A stretch of DNA of 64,000 nucleotides from Camelus dromedarius (Eukaryota): assembly GCF_036321535.1 (NCBI RefSeq), contig NC_087440.1:91264001-91328000 (forward strand), in the 5' to 3' direction. Positions within the stretch are counted from its first letter, which is position 1. Each line of letters begins with the position of its first letter. Positions 2,881 to 60,188 of the stretch are shown here, in pieces. Both the position numbers and the translations under genes were made by a program. The notes under the pieces were generated by a model. That model saw nothing but the letters and a program-made list of their open reading frames with translations. It was not told the origin of the DNA and made no database searches.

Positions 2881-2991
2881 TTTTTGTTTTATTTATGTAT
2901 TTTTTTTTCTTAATGGAGGTACTGGGGGTTGAACCCAAGACCTGGAGCATGCTGAGCCCACGCTCTACCGTGGAGCTATATCCTTCCCTCA
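2881..2991 (-). mobile_element. Camelid tRNA-Ala-derived SINE (vic-1-like)
   Basis: taatggaggtactgggggttgaacccaagacc...gctctaccgtggagctata with T-rich tail. TSD ggctctggag (2871-2880) / ggctcaggag (2992-3001). Confidence 0.85.
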
Positions 2992-5043
2992 GGCTCAGGA
3001 GATTTTAAAGTCTGCTCCATTTAAGAGACGTTTGTTGCTCCCATTTATAATCTGTGATTAATATTTTTATTTGAAACCTGTACAGTGCTTTCTGGTCATG
3101 GGGAGCATGTGCACTGTTGTTATAAGAGGGTCAGAAGCTCATCAAAGAGCAGAGGGAGGTAAAATCATCTTCCGCTCCGGCCCACCTGTCTTGTTAAGGG
3201 GACGGAGTTTCACCCGTGGCCTGGTGGGAGCTCTTTTCCCTGGTATTCCAAGACCTCCAGGATGGAGCGGGGCTCCCCAGGGTGCCTGGCGGGGCTGCCT
3301 GCCCTCCCCAGCCCTCTCCAGGGGGCGGGCAGCCCATTGAGTTCCCCCAGGAAAGCTCAGGGTCGTGCCCCCAGCAGCCAGCAACGTGGTTGGCTCAGAT
3401 GAGCACCCCCAGCAGACACCCACTTGTGCAAAATGCCTCTGTCACCCACAGAAGCCTGAGACGGTTGGGGATTGGTCATAGGTCACTCCAGACAGCATGC
3501 AGAGTTAGCCCAGCACGTGACACCGATACCGGAAGTAATCCCTTTCCAGAGACACGAACAGCTGCATCAGTTGGTCCTGTAGCTCACAAGTTAACGTATT
3601 TCTTCTAATAAAACTCCATTTGCCAAATGACAAGGAATGAGAGACCTGTGAAGCGATTTGCCTCTGCTCTCTCTTAGCAGTGGTTTCAGAACGCAGAGTA
3701 TAGTAGACACTCGTGTCTGTTACATGATTTTAGCAAAAAGTAGGAGGAAAATCATTAAATGATGCATTTTTTAAAATAATTCCTTTTTAAAGACATTTGT
3801 GTTTTAAATTTTTACATCATACTTCCAAACTCAGAGCACTTTTTAAATAAATTTTGGAGTTTTATAAAGTGTAATAATATCATAAAAGATTATCCAGGAG
3901 CCTAAAGACCAAAAGCATCAAAAGCAGTTTGCTATAAACAGATATTGTTCAAAAGCCCCTTGTTTTTAACCACGTGAGGGCTAACAGGCCGGCCTGTAAG
4001 CAGAGTGGTGTGATCTGCGGGGCTGGAGGCGACCACCGAGTGGGGACCACCAGCCCACCCAAGAGTCGGGAGTTCGCGGTGACGTGTGCCGCAGTCCTGC
4101 TGCTTGGCCGGTGGTGGTTCCAGACATCGCTGCGACAAGGCTCAGCGGCTGCTCTGAGTGCCAGGTGGCCGTTGTGGTTACGTGTGCAAGTGTGTGTGTG
4201 CTTTACGTACCCGCACAGAAGTGTTTGGATCGTTGTGCTGGCTTAGACTTAAGGTAGCTCCAGTCTAGGAGAAGTTCTAATCTGCATTCCAAATCTGGTG
4301 TTTGGGGTGAACAGCCTTTACTGATTTGGTTGTGGGAGGAAGTCTGGGGGCTGCAGGAACATGGTAAAGAAAGGCAGAGACTCATGGTCTGCGGTGTGAC
4401 GGGCCAGGAACAGGACGCCCGGCGCTCACCCCTAGGAGCTGTGGCCGCCCGGCTGGACGTGCCTCACAGGGATGGGGGGTCCTAGCTGGGGCCGGGCTGC
4501 CACCCACTCACTGCCGGCTGGCTCTCCTCAGGCCCCTGCATGGGTTTAGTAACAGTGTCTTCTCGGCAGCCCCTCTTTGAGGAGGGCTCGGGGGCACCAG
4601 CCACGCCACGCACAGGGGGTTTGCCACCAACATCAGTTGGCTTTACGTCTCTCTTTTGGGTGTGTTTTAGCACAATTGAAAGCACTGTGTGCACACACAC
4701 TCTGTGTGTGTGGGTGTGTGAACACACCTGAGCGGCCGGTTAGCCTGAGAGAGAAGCAGAGTGTGCGGTGCGCGTGTGCCGCCAGCCCGCGCCGCAGAGC
4801 CAGCCCGCGCCGGGGCGCATGTGGACCCTCACCTCTGTGTCTCTCCGCTCGTCCTGTTCTCTCCGAGCTCGCCTAGCTGCCTTTTTCCTGTCTTTTTTTT
4901 TTTTTTTTAAAGAAACTGACTCTCACTGAAATTGTGGTTCGTCAGAGGGGATCACGTAAATTAAAATTGTGGTTCTGAAGCACACAGTATTAGGCCTACC
5001 TCTCTAATTAAAAAAAAACCCAAACCCACGTCCTAATTACTGA

Positions 5044-5504: not shown

Positions 5505-5601
5505 ATTTTGTTTTATTATTATCATTATTAATGGCAGTGCTAGGGATGGAACCCAGGACCTCCTGCATGCTAAGCATGTGCTCTACCACTGAGCTATCCC
5601 C
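5505..5601 (-). mobile_element. vic-1-like SINE
   Basis: taatggcagtgctagggatggaacccaggacctcctgcatgctaagcatgtgctctaccactgagctatccc with (tta)n tail. Confidence 0.85.
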
Positions 5602-6023
5602 TCCCCGTACCACCAGTTTTAAATCAAAGCCACGTTTCCACACACTCCCTCCCTACCCTGCTGCTGTTCGCCACAGGACTTAGCACTTACAAGTCAAACA
5701 GCCCGCCCATCACTTGGGTAGCCATGGAGTGTAAGCTCCACAGAGACATGGAGGTCTGCCTCTCCTGGTTCACTGCGGAACCCTCGGCCAGGCGGCACTG
5801 CCTGTGGTGTAGACACCTAACAGGCAGGTGGGGGATGGTTGGGGAGGATAGCTTGCGGCAGGGGCGGGTGAGCTCATCTGGCTTGTCCCTCGGCATCCAG
5901 CCCACGTCCAGCAGAGATGTTTGCTGGAGTCGTGGATAAATGAGTGATCGTGATCTTGACACACAAGAGGTCATCTGCCTCTTTGCTGAAGACCCTTCAA
6001 GGTTACAGTCTAGGGTACTTTGA

Positions 6024-8439: not shown

Positions 8440-8919
<480 letters not shown>

Positions 8920-13688: not shown

Positions 13689-13805
13689 TACGCGGTGTAT
13701 AGCCAGGCCAGCACCGTGAGCGTGCCCGTGGCAATGGACACAGATGGGCCTTTGTTTGAAGATGTGCAGATGCTGAGAAAGACAGTGAACGAAGAGTCTC
13801 GCCAG
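13689..13805 (+). CDS. PPP2R5C: PPP2R5C gamma3-specific cassette exon ([39 protein letters not shown])
   Basis: cattgcag| acceptor and |gtaacc donor; 117 bp = 39 aa, matching the known gamma3-versus-gamma2 difference. Confidence 0.95.
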
Positions 13806-14663
13806 GTAACCGTGCACACAGCCCCTTGGGGCCCACGGGGCCCCATAGAGGTTTGCTTAAGACATGCGTGTGGCTCCAGTGATGACAGACACCATGCCTC
13901 CGTGTCAGCCACAGCGAAGACGTACGGTCACCTGCCAGGAAGTGCTATCCATGCATCTTAGGGACCACATCAGTAGGAACAGGTTTTAAGGATGAAGTGT
14001 GTGCCTGCAGGTGTCTCTTCGGTTATTTTCACAGCAGCGGCCCCAGGTCTTAACTGTTCCTGACATGTTAGCCAGAGCAAAAACTCAGGTTTGCAGCTGC
14101 GTCTTCCCTCTGGGCCCCTCTGCACCCCTCTGACTTCTGCTCTGGCCCTTCTACTCCACAGGGTGACTGACTGCCAGTCCCAGGCCCCAGGACCCCAGGC
14201 AGAGCCCTGGCCCTGCCCACAGCTGGGTCGCGCAGCCTCTCGCACTGTGGTAGGGCCAGGGCTCTGTCAGGACCCTCCTTGTTTCCCCTTTGTGGAAATA
14301 CACATTAGGATCACCACTGATCTAAAGAAAGTCTCCTGTCACTAAACTGGGAATGTATTCGATTTAGGCTTCACAGAGGGTAGTGTACGGAGCTCTGCCC
14401 AAGGGAGGACCCTTGTGCTGTGCGCCCCTGAGCGCACCCGTTCTCAGTCCACGCAGACTGTGTAGTGCTGGCTGGATTTGGGGACGTGGCCCTTTCTGAC
14501 TCTGAAACTTTAATCCCCTTTGAGCTGTGGAAAGGTTCTGAAAGACGTCCAGCGCTACAGCCCCGAAATGTAACAGGTTAGAGAGGCCAGAGTCCTGCTG
14601 CAGGTTGAGTGCAGAGGGGTCATAGATGGTCGCGTCGTTCTGAGCTCAGTTAAACAGAGAGAG

Positions 14664-14720
14664 GTGGCAGTGGACACAGATGGGCCTTTGTTTGAAGATG
14701 TGCAGATGCTGAGAAAGACA
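14664..14720 (+). repeat. 57-bp dispersed copy of part of the gamma3 exon (13728-13784)
   Basis: 56/57 identical; the single difference is gcaAtgg versus gcaGtgg. Confidence 0.97.
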
Positions 14721-15969
14721 TTTGTCTTGTCTGTTTTTAATTCAAGTAAACTGTATCCCCCACCTGATCAGACAGGTTCAGGCGTTGCCAAGAGCCCGTG
14801 GTCTAGACCATGCAGACGGCGTTGCCCAGGGCACACGGGACACAGCCCAGCCTGTGTGAGGAGGAGACCCCGGGAACGCCTCCTGCGTGCTCTTCTGCTC
14901 GTGATAATGTGTCAGTGCTGTTTTGGATATGCCAGGTTGAATGAAAAACATTCTTAAAGTAAATTTCTCCTGTTGCTTTTCACTCTTTTAACGTGGCTGA
15001 CTAGAAAGTTTAGAATCACACCCCCTGCTGGCCTTGTTTTCCAGCCGGACCGCACTGGTCCAGGCACCCTTCGTGCAGGAGAGGCTGCCCGGACTCATCC
15101 GTGGCTGTCCCCACCCAGCTAGTTCTTGGTCTTAAGTTAAAGCAGAGACAGGTGGATGCAAACACTAAAAATGCAGTGGGAAAACATCAGTGTCTCGCTT
15201 CTTACTTAATCCAGTTGATTCCGTAATGTCCTCACAACTAATAGTCTTAGCAATGAACTGATTGGATCAAAAACATGACAATCTTTGTTTTTCATTCTTC
15301 TGCTTATAGGGGTGTTACTGTTCCCACTTCTTGATTTTTATTTAACTTGGGAAAGAATTTGAGGTCACCTCTTTGATTAACATTTTGATTTTATGGCTTC
15401 AAATGTGCTGGACATGAACGCCAGCCTCATTACTGCAGACAGAGGAGCTCAAAACCAGTGTCCCTCCTCCCAGCAGGTCTGCCTGTGAGCTTGTAACCAC
15501 ACGTCAGTCTTTAAGTCGCTCAGGCCATACGGAGAAGAAAAGGAAATCGGTGGTTTTCAAGCCAGTCCTTACACAGTAAATAATTCAGTGCTGAAGGATT
15601 TTCTTTTTGGTACAGACTTTGACTTGATCATTAAAGACAGGAAAAGAATAAACTATGCCCAAAAGGGCAATGAAAATATTACACAATTACGTGGTCTGTG
15701 GACGTGTCAGTGATTCAGGACCTGCTCTGGGGCACCGAGAGCACAAGTCCAAACAGTGTTCTCGTCTTAAGTAGAACTGCCTTTGAAAGTCGGCTCTAGT
15801 GTGCACGTGGTGGCCACTGCCGGGGAGCCTCCAGCAGCCCGTGGAGGAGGGGGGGAACGTGTGACGAAGGAAGCAGTCTCTGTGGTCACCTCCTCGCTGG
15901 TTCTGAGCCACGACATGCAGACAGGATGTTTCTGGAGAACTCTTACAGCTTGCTGGTTTGTTCTCATGA

Positions 15970-19235: not shown

Positions 19236-19367
19236 GCACACAAGGACCTGAAGAAGGACCGGCCCCTGGTGCGCCGCAAGTCCGAGCTGCCCGAGGACCT
19301 ACACACCAAGAGCGCCCTGGAGGCCCACAGCCGAGCCGAGGACCTGGTGCCCCAGGACGGGCGCTAG
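19236..19367 (+). CDS. PPP2R5C: PPP2R5C last coding exon of gamma2/gamma3 ([43 protein letters not shown])
   Basis: ttcattccag| acceptor; B56 RRKSELP motif; TAG at 19365-19367. Confidence 0.96.
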
Positions 19368-21002: not shown

Positions 21003-21142
21003 NNNNNNNNNNNNNNNNNNNNNNNNNNNNNNNNNNNNNNNNNNNNNNNNNNNNNNNNNNNNNNNNNNNNNNNNNNNNNNNNNNNNNNNNNNNNNNNNNN
21101 NNNNNNNNNNNNNNNNNNNNNNNNNNNNNNNNNNNNNNNNNN
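21003..21142. other. Assembly gap (N)
   Basis: Run of N. Confidence 1.
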
Positions 21143-31987: not shown

Positions 31988-32465
31988 CAAAGTAGTTGTC
32001 ATATATATACAGTGGACTACCATTCAGCCATAAAAAAGAATGAAATCATGCCATTTGTAGCAACATGGTTGGACCTGGAGATCGTCACTCTAAGTGAAGT
32101 AAGTCAGACAGAGAAAGAAAAATGCCATGTGCCATCACTTATACATGGAATCTCAAAAGTGAGACAAATGAACTTATTCACAAAACAGAAACAGACTCAC
32201 AGACATAGAAAACAAACTTATGGTTACCAGGGGGGAGAGAGGGAGGGAAGGGATAAGCTGGGAGTTAGCGATTAGCAGATACCCACTACTGTATATAAAA
32301 TAGATATGCACTACTACTGCGCAGCACAGGGAACTACATAATACCTTGTAACAGCCTATAATGGAAAAGAATATGGAAAGGAATGTATGTATGTATAAGT
32401 GAATCACCATGCTGCACACCAGAAACTAACACATTGTAAACTGACTATATGTCAATTTTAAAAAA
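31988..32465 (+). mobile_element. L1 ORF2 C-terminus and 3' UTR, 5'-truncated
   Basis: Encodes [32 protein letters not shown] (L1 ORF2 end). agattatc is repeated at both flanks. Confidence 0.9.
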
Positions 32466-44212: not shown

Positions 44213-44354
44213 NNNNNNNNNNNNNNNNNNNNNNNNNNNNNNNNNNNNNNNNNNNNNNNNNNNNNNNNNNNNNNNNNNNNNNNNNNNNNNNNNNNNNNNN
44301 NNNNNNNNNNNNNNNNNNNNNNNNNNNNNNNNNNNNNNNNNNNNNNNNNNNNNC
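44213..44354. other. Assembly gap (N)
   Basis: Run of N. Confidence 1.
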
Positions 44355-45127
44355 CACAAACAATAAATGCTAGAGAGGGTGTGGAGAAAAGGGAATCCTC
44401 CTACACTGTTGGTGGGAATGTAGTTTTGTGCAGCCATTATGGAAAACATACGGGTTTTCCTCAAAAAACTAAAAATAGACTCACCATATGACCCAGCAAT
44501 CTTGCTCCTGGGCATATACCTGGAGAAAACTCTAATTCAAAAAGGTGCATGCACCCCAAAGTTCACAGCAGCCCTGNNNNNNNNNNNNNNNNNNNNNNNN
44601 NNNNNNNNNNNNNNNNNNNNNNNNNNNNNNNNNNNNNNNNNNNNNNNNNNNNNNNNNNNNNNNNNNNNNNNNNNNNNNNNNNNNNNNNNNNNNNNNNNNN
44701 NNNNNNNNNNATGGACAGACCTGGTGATCATCATTCTAAGTGAAGTAAGCCAGAAAGAGAATACCATACCATACCACTTATATGTGGAGTCTTAAAAAAA
44801 AAAAGACAAATGAACTTATTTACAAAACAGAAACAGATTCACAGACATAGAAAACAAACTTACTGTTACCAGAGGGAAAGAGGGTGGGAAGGGATAAATT
44901 GGGAGTTCGAGATTTGCAGATACTAACTAATATGTATAAAATAGGTAAACAACAAGTTTATACATATAGCACAGGGAACTGTATTCAATGTCTGAGTATT
45001 GTGAAAAATAATACGAAAACGAATACATATATTTCATGTATGAATGAAGCATTATGCTGTACACCAGAAATTGACACAATATTGCAAACTGACTATACTT
45101 CAATAAAAATATATATATACAAAAAAA
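44355..45127 (+). mobile_element. Young L1 ORF2 end and 3' UTR (contains N gap 44577-44710)
   Basis: acaataaatgctagagagggtgtggagaaaagggaa...; encodes [21 protein letters not shown]; A-rich tail. Confidence 0.9.
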
Positions 45128-52500: not shown

Positions 52501-52545
<45 letters not shown>

Positions 52546-52619
52546 TTAATGGCAGTACTGAGGATTGAACCCAGGGTCTCACGCGTGCTAAGCATGCGCT
52601 CTACCACTGAGCTTACCCT
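52451..52619 (-). mobile_element. vic-1-like SINE with expanded internal microsatellite
   Basis: ttggggtaattag...taatggcagtactgaggattgaacccaggg...ctaccactgagcttaccc. Confidence 0.85.
52473..52545. repeat. (AAT)n-(ATT)n inverted microsatellite
   Basis: About 10 AAT units abut about 15 ATT units; perfect palindrome 52473-52530. Confidence 0.97.
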
Positions 52620-55600
52620 GCCCCCGAGAAACATTTTTTAATATGAAAGTCTGTCTATTTTATCTATTTTTAACTGCTCCAGCTAGCTATAAACTTTTTT
52701 TGTTTAAGTGCAGCATTCCTTAAAGTGTGGAATAAATGTTGTGAATTTAACAATTTATTTTGATAGCGAAGAATTGGAGAGTTGGTAGGAAAGGAAATGT
52801 TAAATCTCATTTTAAGAAGAGAATTCTCCTTTCTAAAATTCCTGGCGTGTAAAAAATTGTTTCCTCATAATACTTCTAAAAGTATGACCAGATGTGTGGT
52901 CATTACCTAATAGGCATTTTACAATGTTAGTGATGTTTTTGGAGCACTTTTAAGCCAAAATGCATTTTTGGTTGTGTTTCATCCCAGTGAGAAGTTGGGT
53001 GGTAAAGGTAGGAACAGGTAAGGATGCTCCGGTTTGCAGCTGGTGGAGCTGGCGGTTCCCGGGCTCGTCAGTGTCCAAGCTGGGAACAGGTGGTGTGGGG
53101 CTTGGGGGGGGGGTTCCACTCGGCTGTCTTATCCTTGGAACTTTGTCTGTAAGACCGAATATAGTGGCTTCTTTAGCCAATACTTATCCTAAACTAGGAA
53201 TTCTAGTCTTTCCCGAGGTGCATGATTTAGGAGTTTTACGTCTGTCCTCTTCATCAGTGCAGAGATGGCTTAGGACTGGAATGTGAAAGGTAGTGCTTAT
53301 AGGACTCAACTCCCAGAGGTGTAGCGGTGTAGAGAGCTTTATGAGGAATGTTTTTGTGGAGTTTTAAAAGTTATTTTTCTGAGGACTTAATTCCCCTAAA
53401 AGATGAAGACATGCAGTAGATTAATGACTAAGAAGTATTAATTTTGGGCCTATACTTAGATCTCAGACTGGTTAATGAAGTGATCAGTAAATTAACAGGA
53501 AGCATTTCCTGTGGCACCAGACTGTCTCAGAGCACTGGGCCAGGAGTCCATCAGCCTGGGTCCCTCCTGTCCTGTGCTGTCACGCTGTAGGCGGGGGCCC
53601 TTACACCCTTTGTGGGACAGGCCAGTGGGCAGCAAGATGAGTCTGATGCAGCAAGTGTAGTGTAGCGTAGTGAGCAAAGTGCACGTACTGGAAAGGGAAG
53701 ACAGTCATCACTTCTTTTTAAAAAGTTAAGATGGATGGACTTTTTGTCTGGCAACATTATAGGGAATCAGGCTGAGAGGGGTGGAAGAGATTTAGTCCGG
53801 CCTCCTCTGTCGTGAGTGAGGAAACTGAAACCCCAGGGTTTTAAGACCCACTTGGGAAAAAGATGTTTTAAGGAGCATCCTGGAACCCAGAAACTAATTT
53901 CTCTGTTCAGTTCCTTGGTATCCATTAAAACAGGCGTGTTTGTTTTCATTTACTTCATGTCAGTTATTTCCTTTGAATTAGTGTTAACCTTAAAAAGCAT
54001 TGTCTTTAGTCCCTTAGGCATTACTAACTTGCTAGTTTTTTCACTTCTTTATTTCTCTTTTTTTCTGGAAACTTCACAATGGAAGCATCACATGAGGTTT
54101 GACCCTCCTTTCATATTCCCATCAATGTTACAGATGGAAGTCTTCAGATTGAAGAGTAAACTAAAGACTTTCTCACCATGCTCTCAGCTTTGTGCCAGAG
54201 CAGGGAGGGGTGGTGGCAGAGAAGCCGCAGCCCCTCAGAAGCAGGACCAAAGGGTGGGTGGATGTCGAGGTGACGGGAGAAAGCACCAGAGATGGGAGAG
54301 GAGAAAAACTAAAGCAACCATGTGAGAAAAAAAGAGAAAGATGTGTGGTAGTGACCAGCCAAAATATTGTGGTATTAGTAGGTCTGGATTTTAAAAGGAA
54401 AAGAAGATGAAAGATAAAGAGAGCCAGGAACACATAACAAGTAATTTGGCCAAGAAAATGCCTGGATTGGTTGGTTTGCTAGCCCGAGAAGAGACTTGCC
54501 CTGTGTCAGAAGGTTAGGGGGAAGGTGAGTGACCCGGGGCGCAGGGAGCTGCAGCCTCGCCTGGCCCCCTTCCCATTGCCCGCCCCGCAGGCTCTGGAAA
54601 CCTGCCTGTCTGCCTGTTAAGGTAGTTGAATGTGCATCTGTTATTTCATAAAACGAGGCATATTGTTCTCAGAATTCACAGTGTAATGATACAAGTCACT
54701 CGTGGTTTGAAATACACTAAACTAGTCTTTCAACAGAAGTGCTCACAGACTAGTGCTAAATGACATTTTGAACATCTCTAGGAGTTCAGTAAACTCTGAG
54801 AAGTTAGCCCAGGAAACGTGCACAGAGGTGAGGTGTGGTAGTGCGGCTTGCAGCAGGGGAGCTGGCGAGGCGGGCGAGCTCTCCGTGCCGTTCTCTGAGT
54901 GCGTTAGCGAGCAGCATGGCACCTGCCTGCCGTGTGTTACTTGGTAACTTCAGCATCACTAGGGGACTGGTTCAGATTCTACTGCAGGGGGTCTCTATTA
55001 CCTGATAAAACATGCAGATTGTGTTTGTATATAAGCTTCTAACTATACCAGGATTAATACCCTCTCTGTTAACATTGGACTGTCAAGTGTCTTTCCTCCT
55101 TCGAACAATTTTTTGAAAATATTTCTGCAGAAGTAGAATTACTGTTATTTGAAAGATGTAACAACTTACAAAGAGGCAAGAAAGTTTAAATTATTTGGCA
55201 GTGTATAAAACAATGTCATAGTTTTTTCACAATGGGAATCAGATACGCAGACTTCATTTGATCTTTGTATTTGTGGAGAATAGCACTGAACAACTAACCT
55301 AAAATGTAGTCTATGGCTGATTAATAATGACTTCCATAAGTAATTGTCATTGAAAGAAGTTAAAATTTGCCAAAGCAGTTGCATCTGCCATTTGCGTCTC
55401 CCTGTGTGAGGATTATGTCACTGGGTGTGCCTCCCGAGCCGGCAGCGTTCTGCTGCATTGCGGTGCTGTTCCTCGTGCGGGCGGGGCATTCACAGCAGTC
55501 CCGGGTCGGCAGTGACTCATTGCTTGGCGTGGTGCCCTGTTCCTTTAACCCTGTTAGGACCTGCTGGTGTCCAGTCGGCATGTGTAATTTTATTTATACA

Positions 55601-56826: not shown

Positions 56827-57427
56827 TTTTTTAATTTTATTATTATTTTTTAAAATATATTTTTATTGACGTATAGACAGTTTATAGTGCTTTGTCAGTT
56901 TCTGGTGCACAGCACAATGCTCCAGTCATATAGGAACATGTGTGTATTCGTTTTCATATTCTCTTTTCATCATAAGTTACTACAAGATACTGAATATCGT
57001 TCCCTGTGCTATACAGGATGAACTTGTTGTTTATCTATTTTATACATATTAGTTATTATCTGCAAATCTCGAACTCCCAGTTTATCCCTTCCCACCCTCT
57101 TTCCCTCTGGTAACCATAAGTTTGTTTTCCATGTCTGTGAGTCTGTTTCTGTTTTGTAAATAAGTTCGTTTGTCTTTTTTTTTTTTTTTTTTTTTTTTAA
57201 GATTCCACATATGAGTGATACCANNNNNNNNNNNNNNNNNNNNNNNNNNNNNNNNNNNNNNNNNNNNNNNNNNNNNNNNNNNNNNNNNNNNNNNNNNNNN
57301 NNNNNNNNNNNNNNNNNNNNNNNNNNNNNNNNNNNNNNNNNNNNNNNNNNNNNNNNNNNNNNNNNNNCCAGTCATCTGTCGATAGACATTTAGGTTGTTT
57401 CCATGTCTTGGCTGTTGTAAATAGTGC
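56827..57427 (-). mobile_element. Young 5'-truncated L1 with perfect 16-bp TSD (contains N gap 57224-57367)
   Basis: tgatagcagttttctt at 56811-56826 and 57428-57443. Confidence 0.92.
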
Positions 57428-60052: not shown

Positions 60053-60188
60053 TATTTATTTTGTTTGTTTTTGGAGTGGGGTAGGTAATTAGGTTTATTT
60101 ATTTATTTTAATGGAGGTACTGGGGATTGAACCGAGGACCTATTGCATGCTGAGCACACACTACCACTGAGCTATACCCACCCGCCAA
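60053..60188 (-). mobile_element. vic-1-like SINE, long form, with 10-bp TSD
   Basis: TSD gtctattctt at 60043-60052 and 60189-60198, followed by AA (canonical L1-endonuclease TT/AA site). Confidence 0.9.

Follow-up and report, generated by a model that had tools for sequence, protein, structure and literature searches.

Here we describe a 64-kb stretch of camel DNA (the whole stretch analysed, hereafter the window) whose + strand carries the 3′ end of PPP2R5C, the gene for B56-gamma, a regulatory subunit of protein phosphatase 2A. The host gene is taken to be PPP2R5C because a short intronic copy of one of its exons, the subject of this report, translates into a peptide that matches residues 457-477 of the 524-aa B56-gamma chain 9mf5_B in a PDB search. 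Three exons of the gene are relevant here.

8823-8895, + strand: PPP2R5C exon 12 (human numbering, as in PMC3117819); ends ...ENLAKANPQ, with the phase-0 donor CAG/gtacta
13689-13805, + strand: PPP2R5C exon 13, the gamma3-specific cassette exon of 117 nt or 39 codons; acceptor ttgcattgcag/, donor CAG/gtaacc, phase 0 at both ends
19236-19367, + strand: coding part of exon 14, the last exon; ends ...PQDGR and stop; acceptor ttttcattccag/, phase 0

Intron 13, the last intron of the gene, is 5430 nt long. In human RT-PCR, joining of exons 12, 13 and 14 (394 bp) yields gamma3 and joining of exons 12 and 14 (277 bp) yields gamma2, a difference of 117 bp, whereas gamma1 is made with a 12a extension (PMC3117819). 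The camel exon of 117 nt is thus assigned to human exon 13, as its length equals the difference between the gamma3 and gamma2 products. Read-through of the exon-12 donor (8896-8919) gives ANPQ/VLKKRVM and a stop, a gamma1-type 12a end as in human PPP2R5C, and the gamma1 isoform therefore looks encodable in the camel genome too.

Several other features of the window are recorded here for completeness. Two segments of 168 nt, at 44794-44961 and 57018-57185, form an inverted pair with 95% complementarity, 12 kb apart, with family copies at 32155 and 45332; the pair probably represents young members of a single transposon family. A SINE-like element with a tRNA-like head (GGTTGAACCC...GCTCTACCACTGAGCTA) occurs in four copies (2898-3006, 5516-5624, 52534-52642 and 60096-60162), each preceded by T-rich or ATT simple repeats. 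Four runs of N, 559 N in all, are located at 21003-21142, 44213-44353, 44577-44710 and 57224-57367, none of them near the copy.

A 57-nt copy of part of exon 13 in intron 13

An internal segment of exon 13 is present a second time in the intron that follows it. The two segments form a direct repeat with a start-to-start spacing of 936, in which 56 of the 57 positions are identical.

13728-13784, + strand: source segment, internal to exon 13, which has 39 nt before it and 21 nt after it; comprises no splice site
14664-14720, + strand: intronic copy, oriented like its source; lies in intron 13, 858 nt past the exon-13 donor

The sole mismatch is A at 13734 versus G at 14670, so that ATG (Met) in the exon reads as GTG (Val) in the copy. 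The copy is 19 codons long and contains no CpG. The donor sequence stays in place, as exon 13 is intact at 13689-13805 beside the copy at 14664-14720. Such a repeat cannot be ascribed to chance, because its expectation is ~1e-23 in 64 kb (by simple arithmetic, about 2e9 position pairs x 172/4^57). It is also the only near-perfect two-copy repeat in the whole window; the other families are multi-copy interspersed repeats, alike at 60-92%. A first-pass annotation of this DNA had described a near-perfect 57-bp copy, 936 bp downstream, with one A>G change, and had named the alternatively spliced gamma3 exon as its source. The alignment agrees with the former statement in full, and the match of the 117-nt exon length to the human scheme bears out the latter.

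The position of the mismatch relative to the human protein indicates the direction of the change. The human chain (AMETDG) reads Met-Glu at this point, against Met-Asp in the camel exon and Val-Asp in the copy, with Asp encoded by GAC. The copy thus derives from a camel-type exon, with which it shares Asp, and the A-to-G change took place on the copy, since Met is common to the exon and the human chain.

Presence of the copy in DNA data

The interval 14400-15000 (601 bp, including both junctions) was compared with DNA runs. About 0.95-1.00 of its sampled 31-mers were found in 20 runs from 12 studies and three organisms, the share in DNA runs of these three organisms being given as 0.98-1.00. 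Mis-joined reads can create short exact repeats, and an assembly or sequencing artefact had to be considered on that ground; with words across both junctions contained at this level under three organism labels, and with the upstream flank mapping once in the genome, we regard an artefact as extremely improbable. Misassembly is set aside for the same reason, that runs of 12 studies and three organisms contain both junctions; absence from raw reads, which the first-pass annotation had named as its mark, was not what we found. The copy is at least as old as the ancestor shared by the three organism labels under which it occurs.

Borders and flanks of the copy

Identity between source and copy ends abruptly at both borders. 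In a 400-nt alignment around each copy, it extends by 0 bp past the 57. Two short features lie at the junctions.

14656-14663, + strand: (AG)4 run at the left junction, ending in the AG that is the putative acceptor
14715-14732, + strand: right junction; AAGACA (the last 6 nt of the copy), tt and TGTCTT together make up an inverted repeat of 6 bp that spans the junction

No target-site duplication or poly(A) was found at the copy: the flanks, ...AACAGAGAGAG on the left and TTTGTCTTGTCTG... on the right, share nothing and contain no A-run. No microhomology is apparent at either junction as read, where the insert borders could hide any. An uninterrupted target site would read ...ACAGAGAGAG/TGTCTG.... 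An L1-mediated retrocopy, or class 1 insertion, was rejected, as a target-site duplication of at least 5 bp, poly(A) and a TTTT/A target are all absent.

At the right junction, TGTCT is doubled in tandem (14723-14732) and the local hairpin has a predicted energy of -8.5 kcal/mol. Junction-straddling palindromes of this kind occur at 136 of 63,153 window positions (2 per 1000), a frequency to be read in the light of the fact that this one was spotted after the fact. The palindrome, the tt and the doubled TGTCT may together be a snap-back or fill-in scar. Simple microhomology annealing was tried as a source of the palindrome and the attempted fit fails.

The flanks of the copy are single-copy in the 2.3-Gb genome, the upstream one mapping once. 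Carriage by a transposon was rejected on this ground; only 14921-15020, 200 nt downstream, is an old dispersed repeat. For this repeat, many contigs of the genome carry dispersed matches (at least 16, identity 72-84%), and the repeat provides the last codons and the stop of the open frame described below.

The repeat could also be the last recognizable part of an older 936-bp tandem or exon duplication, kept close to the exon sequence by gene conversion or selection; that it is direct, local and in frame (57 nt being 19 codons) would suit this origin. However, the 879-nt remainders of such a unit (13785-14663 versus 14721-15599) have no homology (best blastn E 0.078, with scraps of 16-24 nt), and the upstream flanks of source and copy are likewise devoid of residual similarity. 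Both splice sites of the exon are missing from the copy. Moreover, 98% identity, synonymous sites included, beside 0% detectable flank homology would need a conversion tract that is razor-sharp at both ends. We therefore judge a decayed duplication to be very improbable. A tandem exon duplication in the strict sense, or a mutually exclusive exon pair, was rejected too, as the copy is exon-internal and its flanks are unrelated. The comparison of junctions and flanks is in keeping with the first-pass description of the copy as non-tandem and free of poly(A) and target-site duplication.

Splice signals and open frame

The location of an exon fragment within an intron raises the question of whether the copy acts on splicing, be it as a cryptic or nascent exon that provides a new C terminus, as a decoy that stalls removal of intron 13, or as an intronic cluster of the enhancer motifs of the exon itself, which would compete for splicing factors and shift the gamma2/gamma3 ratio. 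Several features would allow this. An AG (14662-14663) directly precedes the copy, a better in-frame CAG lies 6 nt upstream of it (14655-7), a donor-like CAA/GTAAAC is found 82 nt in, and the copy brings along whatever exonic enhancers the exon-13 segment has. The reading frame of the copy stays open, and its phase matches that of the two upstream donors.

14574-14957, + strand: open frame that includes the copy, from stop to stop; 127 codons, of which 97 lie from 14664 on; stop at 14955-14957

The signals themselves are poor. At the putative acceptor 14662-3, the pyrimidine content in -20..-5 is 0.375, which places it at the 14th percentile of the 377 AGs in intron 13; 86% of these AGs have a better pyrimidine tract. 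It has G at -3 and lies behind three further AGs within 14 nt upstream. G is the least favoured base at acceptor position -3. By comparison, both real acceptors have a pyrimidine content of 0.75 and C at -3, and neither has an AG upstream. The CAG at 14655-7 scores better, yet is average (55th percentile). The donor-like site at 14746 agrees with 6 of 9 consensus positions and has no G at -1 or +5, and its use would produce an 82-nt exon that shifts the frame; the only other donor-like site, AAA/GTAAAT, is located at 14959. All of these splice-site scores are heuristic rather than MaxEnt values.

The open frame is ordinary, as four forward-frame open frames of at least 97 codons occur in intron 13 over the three frames. 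A protein search, which leaves out longer annotated isoforms, returned no relatives for the 78-aa part of the frame outside the copy. Two neighbouring intronic ORFs are not on record by exact-product look-up, no Rfam family was detected in the intron sequence to the left or right of the copy, and a 25-mer from the right flank had no match in a metagenome scan. The one substitution in the copy is non-synonymous. The copy also lies 858 nt from the exon-13 donor, a distance that is far for position-dependent enhancer effects. In view of these observations, and despite the features that would allow it, we consider a role of the copy in splicing improbable.

These results concur with the first-pass annotation on the AG immediately before the copy, on the 97-codon frame that runs to 14957 in phase with the donors at 8895 and 13805 (both of them phase 0), and on the poor pyrimidine tract. 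It had listed three functional outcomes, of which neutrality is favoured here; the decoy and the nascent exon do not fare well, given the weak acceptor and donors, the ordinary frame and RNA that runs across the acceptor.

RNA from intron 13

In contigs from nine RNA-seq runs of three studies, 92-97% of the words sampled from 14560-14960 and from 14400-15000 are present. Words starting upstream of the putative acceptor make up 28% of the first interval and 46% of the second. The RNA is thus unspliced across the putative acceptor, since the contigs contain words from both sides of it. The libraries are small (0.2-1.0 billion letters, less than half the genome size), and at that size genomic DNA contamination could hardly have assembled the stretch. 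The signal suggests that intron 13 is a retained intron, or that a transcript ends at poly(A) signals inside it. Such signals are located at 15630 (ATTAAA) and at 15647 and 16361 (AATAAA); transcript ends there would account for the strong RNA signal with no part played by the copy.

Intron 13 may be unusually well retained, and nine small runs with 92-97% of the stretch would be in keeping with retention; decoy exons act in retained introns (PMC6097662, PMC7373989). Of all observations, the strong intronic RNA signal alone leaves room for the decoy idea. In its most specific form, enhancer motifs presumed to lie in the copy would engage splicing factors and permit low-level splicing at either the 14655-7 CAG or the 14662-3 AG; removal of intron 13 would be slowed or inclusion of exon 13 lowered, with a lineage-specific shift among gamma2, gamma3 and intron-retaining transcripts. 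Decoy activity needs working splice sites (PMC7373989), and those at the copy are poor; we regard this specific chain of events as highly improbable. Were it true, a decoy element would have been born in one step from a repair patch, in the gene of a tumour-suppressor phosphatase subunit.

Origin and age of the copy

With a transposon, an L1-type retrocopy and a decayed tandem duplication excluded, one-step copying of a short template into a break remains. The best fit is a single templated patch made during break repair or template switching, and templated patches without target-site duplication or poly(A) are a described class (PMC5110952; PMC8421209). The first-pass annotation had likewise proposed a templated insertion from double-strand-break repair; the sharp borders, the lack of target-site duplication and poly(A), and the unrelated single-copy flanks all agree with that proposal. 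We consider with moderate confidence that the copy is a real, lineage-specific, non-tandem templated repair patch and is now a neutral passenger without effect on splicing.

The sequence of events would be as follows. A break or stalled fork in intron 13, in the germline, would have been patched with 57 nt copied from the exon 936 bp upstream, the template being on the same molecule or on the sister chromatid. The copying would have come about through a template switch during end joining or break-induced replication, and a short snap-back fill-in was possibly added at the right junction. From then on the patch would have been a neutral passenger, transcribed in the pre-mRNA and removed with the intron, with no measurable effect on the gamma2/gamma3 choice, and it would have gained one substitution (A to G, Met to Val) that is not tolerated in the exon. 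The repair mechanism, a DNA rather than RNA template, and neutrality are the parts of this account that we infer.

Some points run counter to it. No microhomology is seen as the junctions read, whereas most MMBIR-type junctions have it, and known MMBIR templated insertions were sought within 100 bp, whereas the template here is 936 bp away (PMC8421209). A random local template would seldom fall wholly inside the only exon within 5 kb, a rarity to be set against a survey that flags exonic cases only. Lastly, neutrality is deduced from weak signals, and RNA contigs contain nearly all of the intron stretch.

The patch might instead have been templated by RNA, a piece of PPP2R5C transcript having been reverse-transcribed or used directly, as in a class 2 templated sequence insertion. 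The copy is purely exonic and in sense orientation, with no target-site duplication, poly(A) or microhomology, all of which are listed for class 2; events of that class are reported as RNA-derived (PMC5110952), and transcripts of the gene are present at the locus. However, the 57 nt lie inside a 117-nt exon and cross no exon junction, so that nothing marks a spliced RNA. Were a mature mRNA of several kb the template, a random piece of it would seldom be from the exon nearest the break, and class 2 donors are described as distant regions, not as sequences 936 bp away (PMC5110952). An RNA template is thus conceivable but unlikely; a local DNA template is favoured because the donor is the nearest exon.

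For the templated patch, one change in 57 nt fits drift over a time that we put very approximately at 15 million years (Poisson range about 0.4 to 80), at a rate that is our own assumption (1.2e-9 per site per year).

Significance

If neutral, as we think it is, the copy offers a clean case of a germline templated repair patch that can be dated and whose donor lies 936 bp away. It would then be a useful phylogenetic marker for camelids and a data point on the frequency with which exon pieces are scattered into introns. A change in PPP2R5C splicing would make it more important, since the C-terminal tail of this PP2A regulatory subunit depends on the gamma2/gamma3 choice; in that case a regulatory element would have arisen in a single repair event, and no finding points there.

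Comparison with known systems

Decoy exons in retained introns (PMC6097662, PMC7373989) resemble the camel copy in being exon-like sequences deep in an intron of more than 1 kb of a regulated gene, and the camel intron is well represented in RNA libraries. By contrast, decoy exons need functional 3′ and 5′ splice sites (PMC7373989), whereas both sites are poor at the camel copy; by heuristic scores, functional flanking splice sites are lacking there.

Class 2 TSI/TSIP (Onozawa and Aplan; PMC5110952) are closer. They too are short copies whose donor is kept, with no target-site duplication, poly(A) or L1 target motif, and they are heritable and read as patches on germline double-strand breaks. 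The donors described are distant and often RNA-derived, whereas the camel donor lies 936 bp away in the same gene. The camel copy thus displays the retained donor and the absence of target-site duplication and poly(A) listed for the class, and differs from it in the proximity of its template.

MMBIR and polymerase-theta insertions (PMC8421209; PMC4032859; PMC5068794) differ from the camel copy in two respects. The templates studied lie within about 100 bp, whereas the camel template, at 936 bp, exceeds the 100-bp radius of PMC8421209, and the junctions studied nearly always have 2-12 bp of microhomology, whereas identity at the camel copy extends by 0 bp. They resemble it in a possible second snap-back step, which would correspond to the 6-bp inverted repeat and the doubled TGTCT, and in the use of a nearby template in cis for an insert of at least 10 bp. 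Where these studies look for a cis template, an insert of at least 10 bp and an identity of at least 80%, the camel copy has 57 nt at 98% identity on the same strand.
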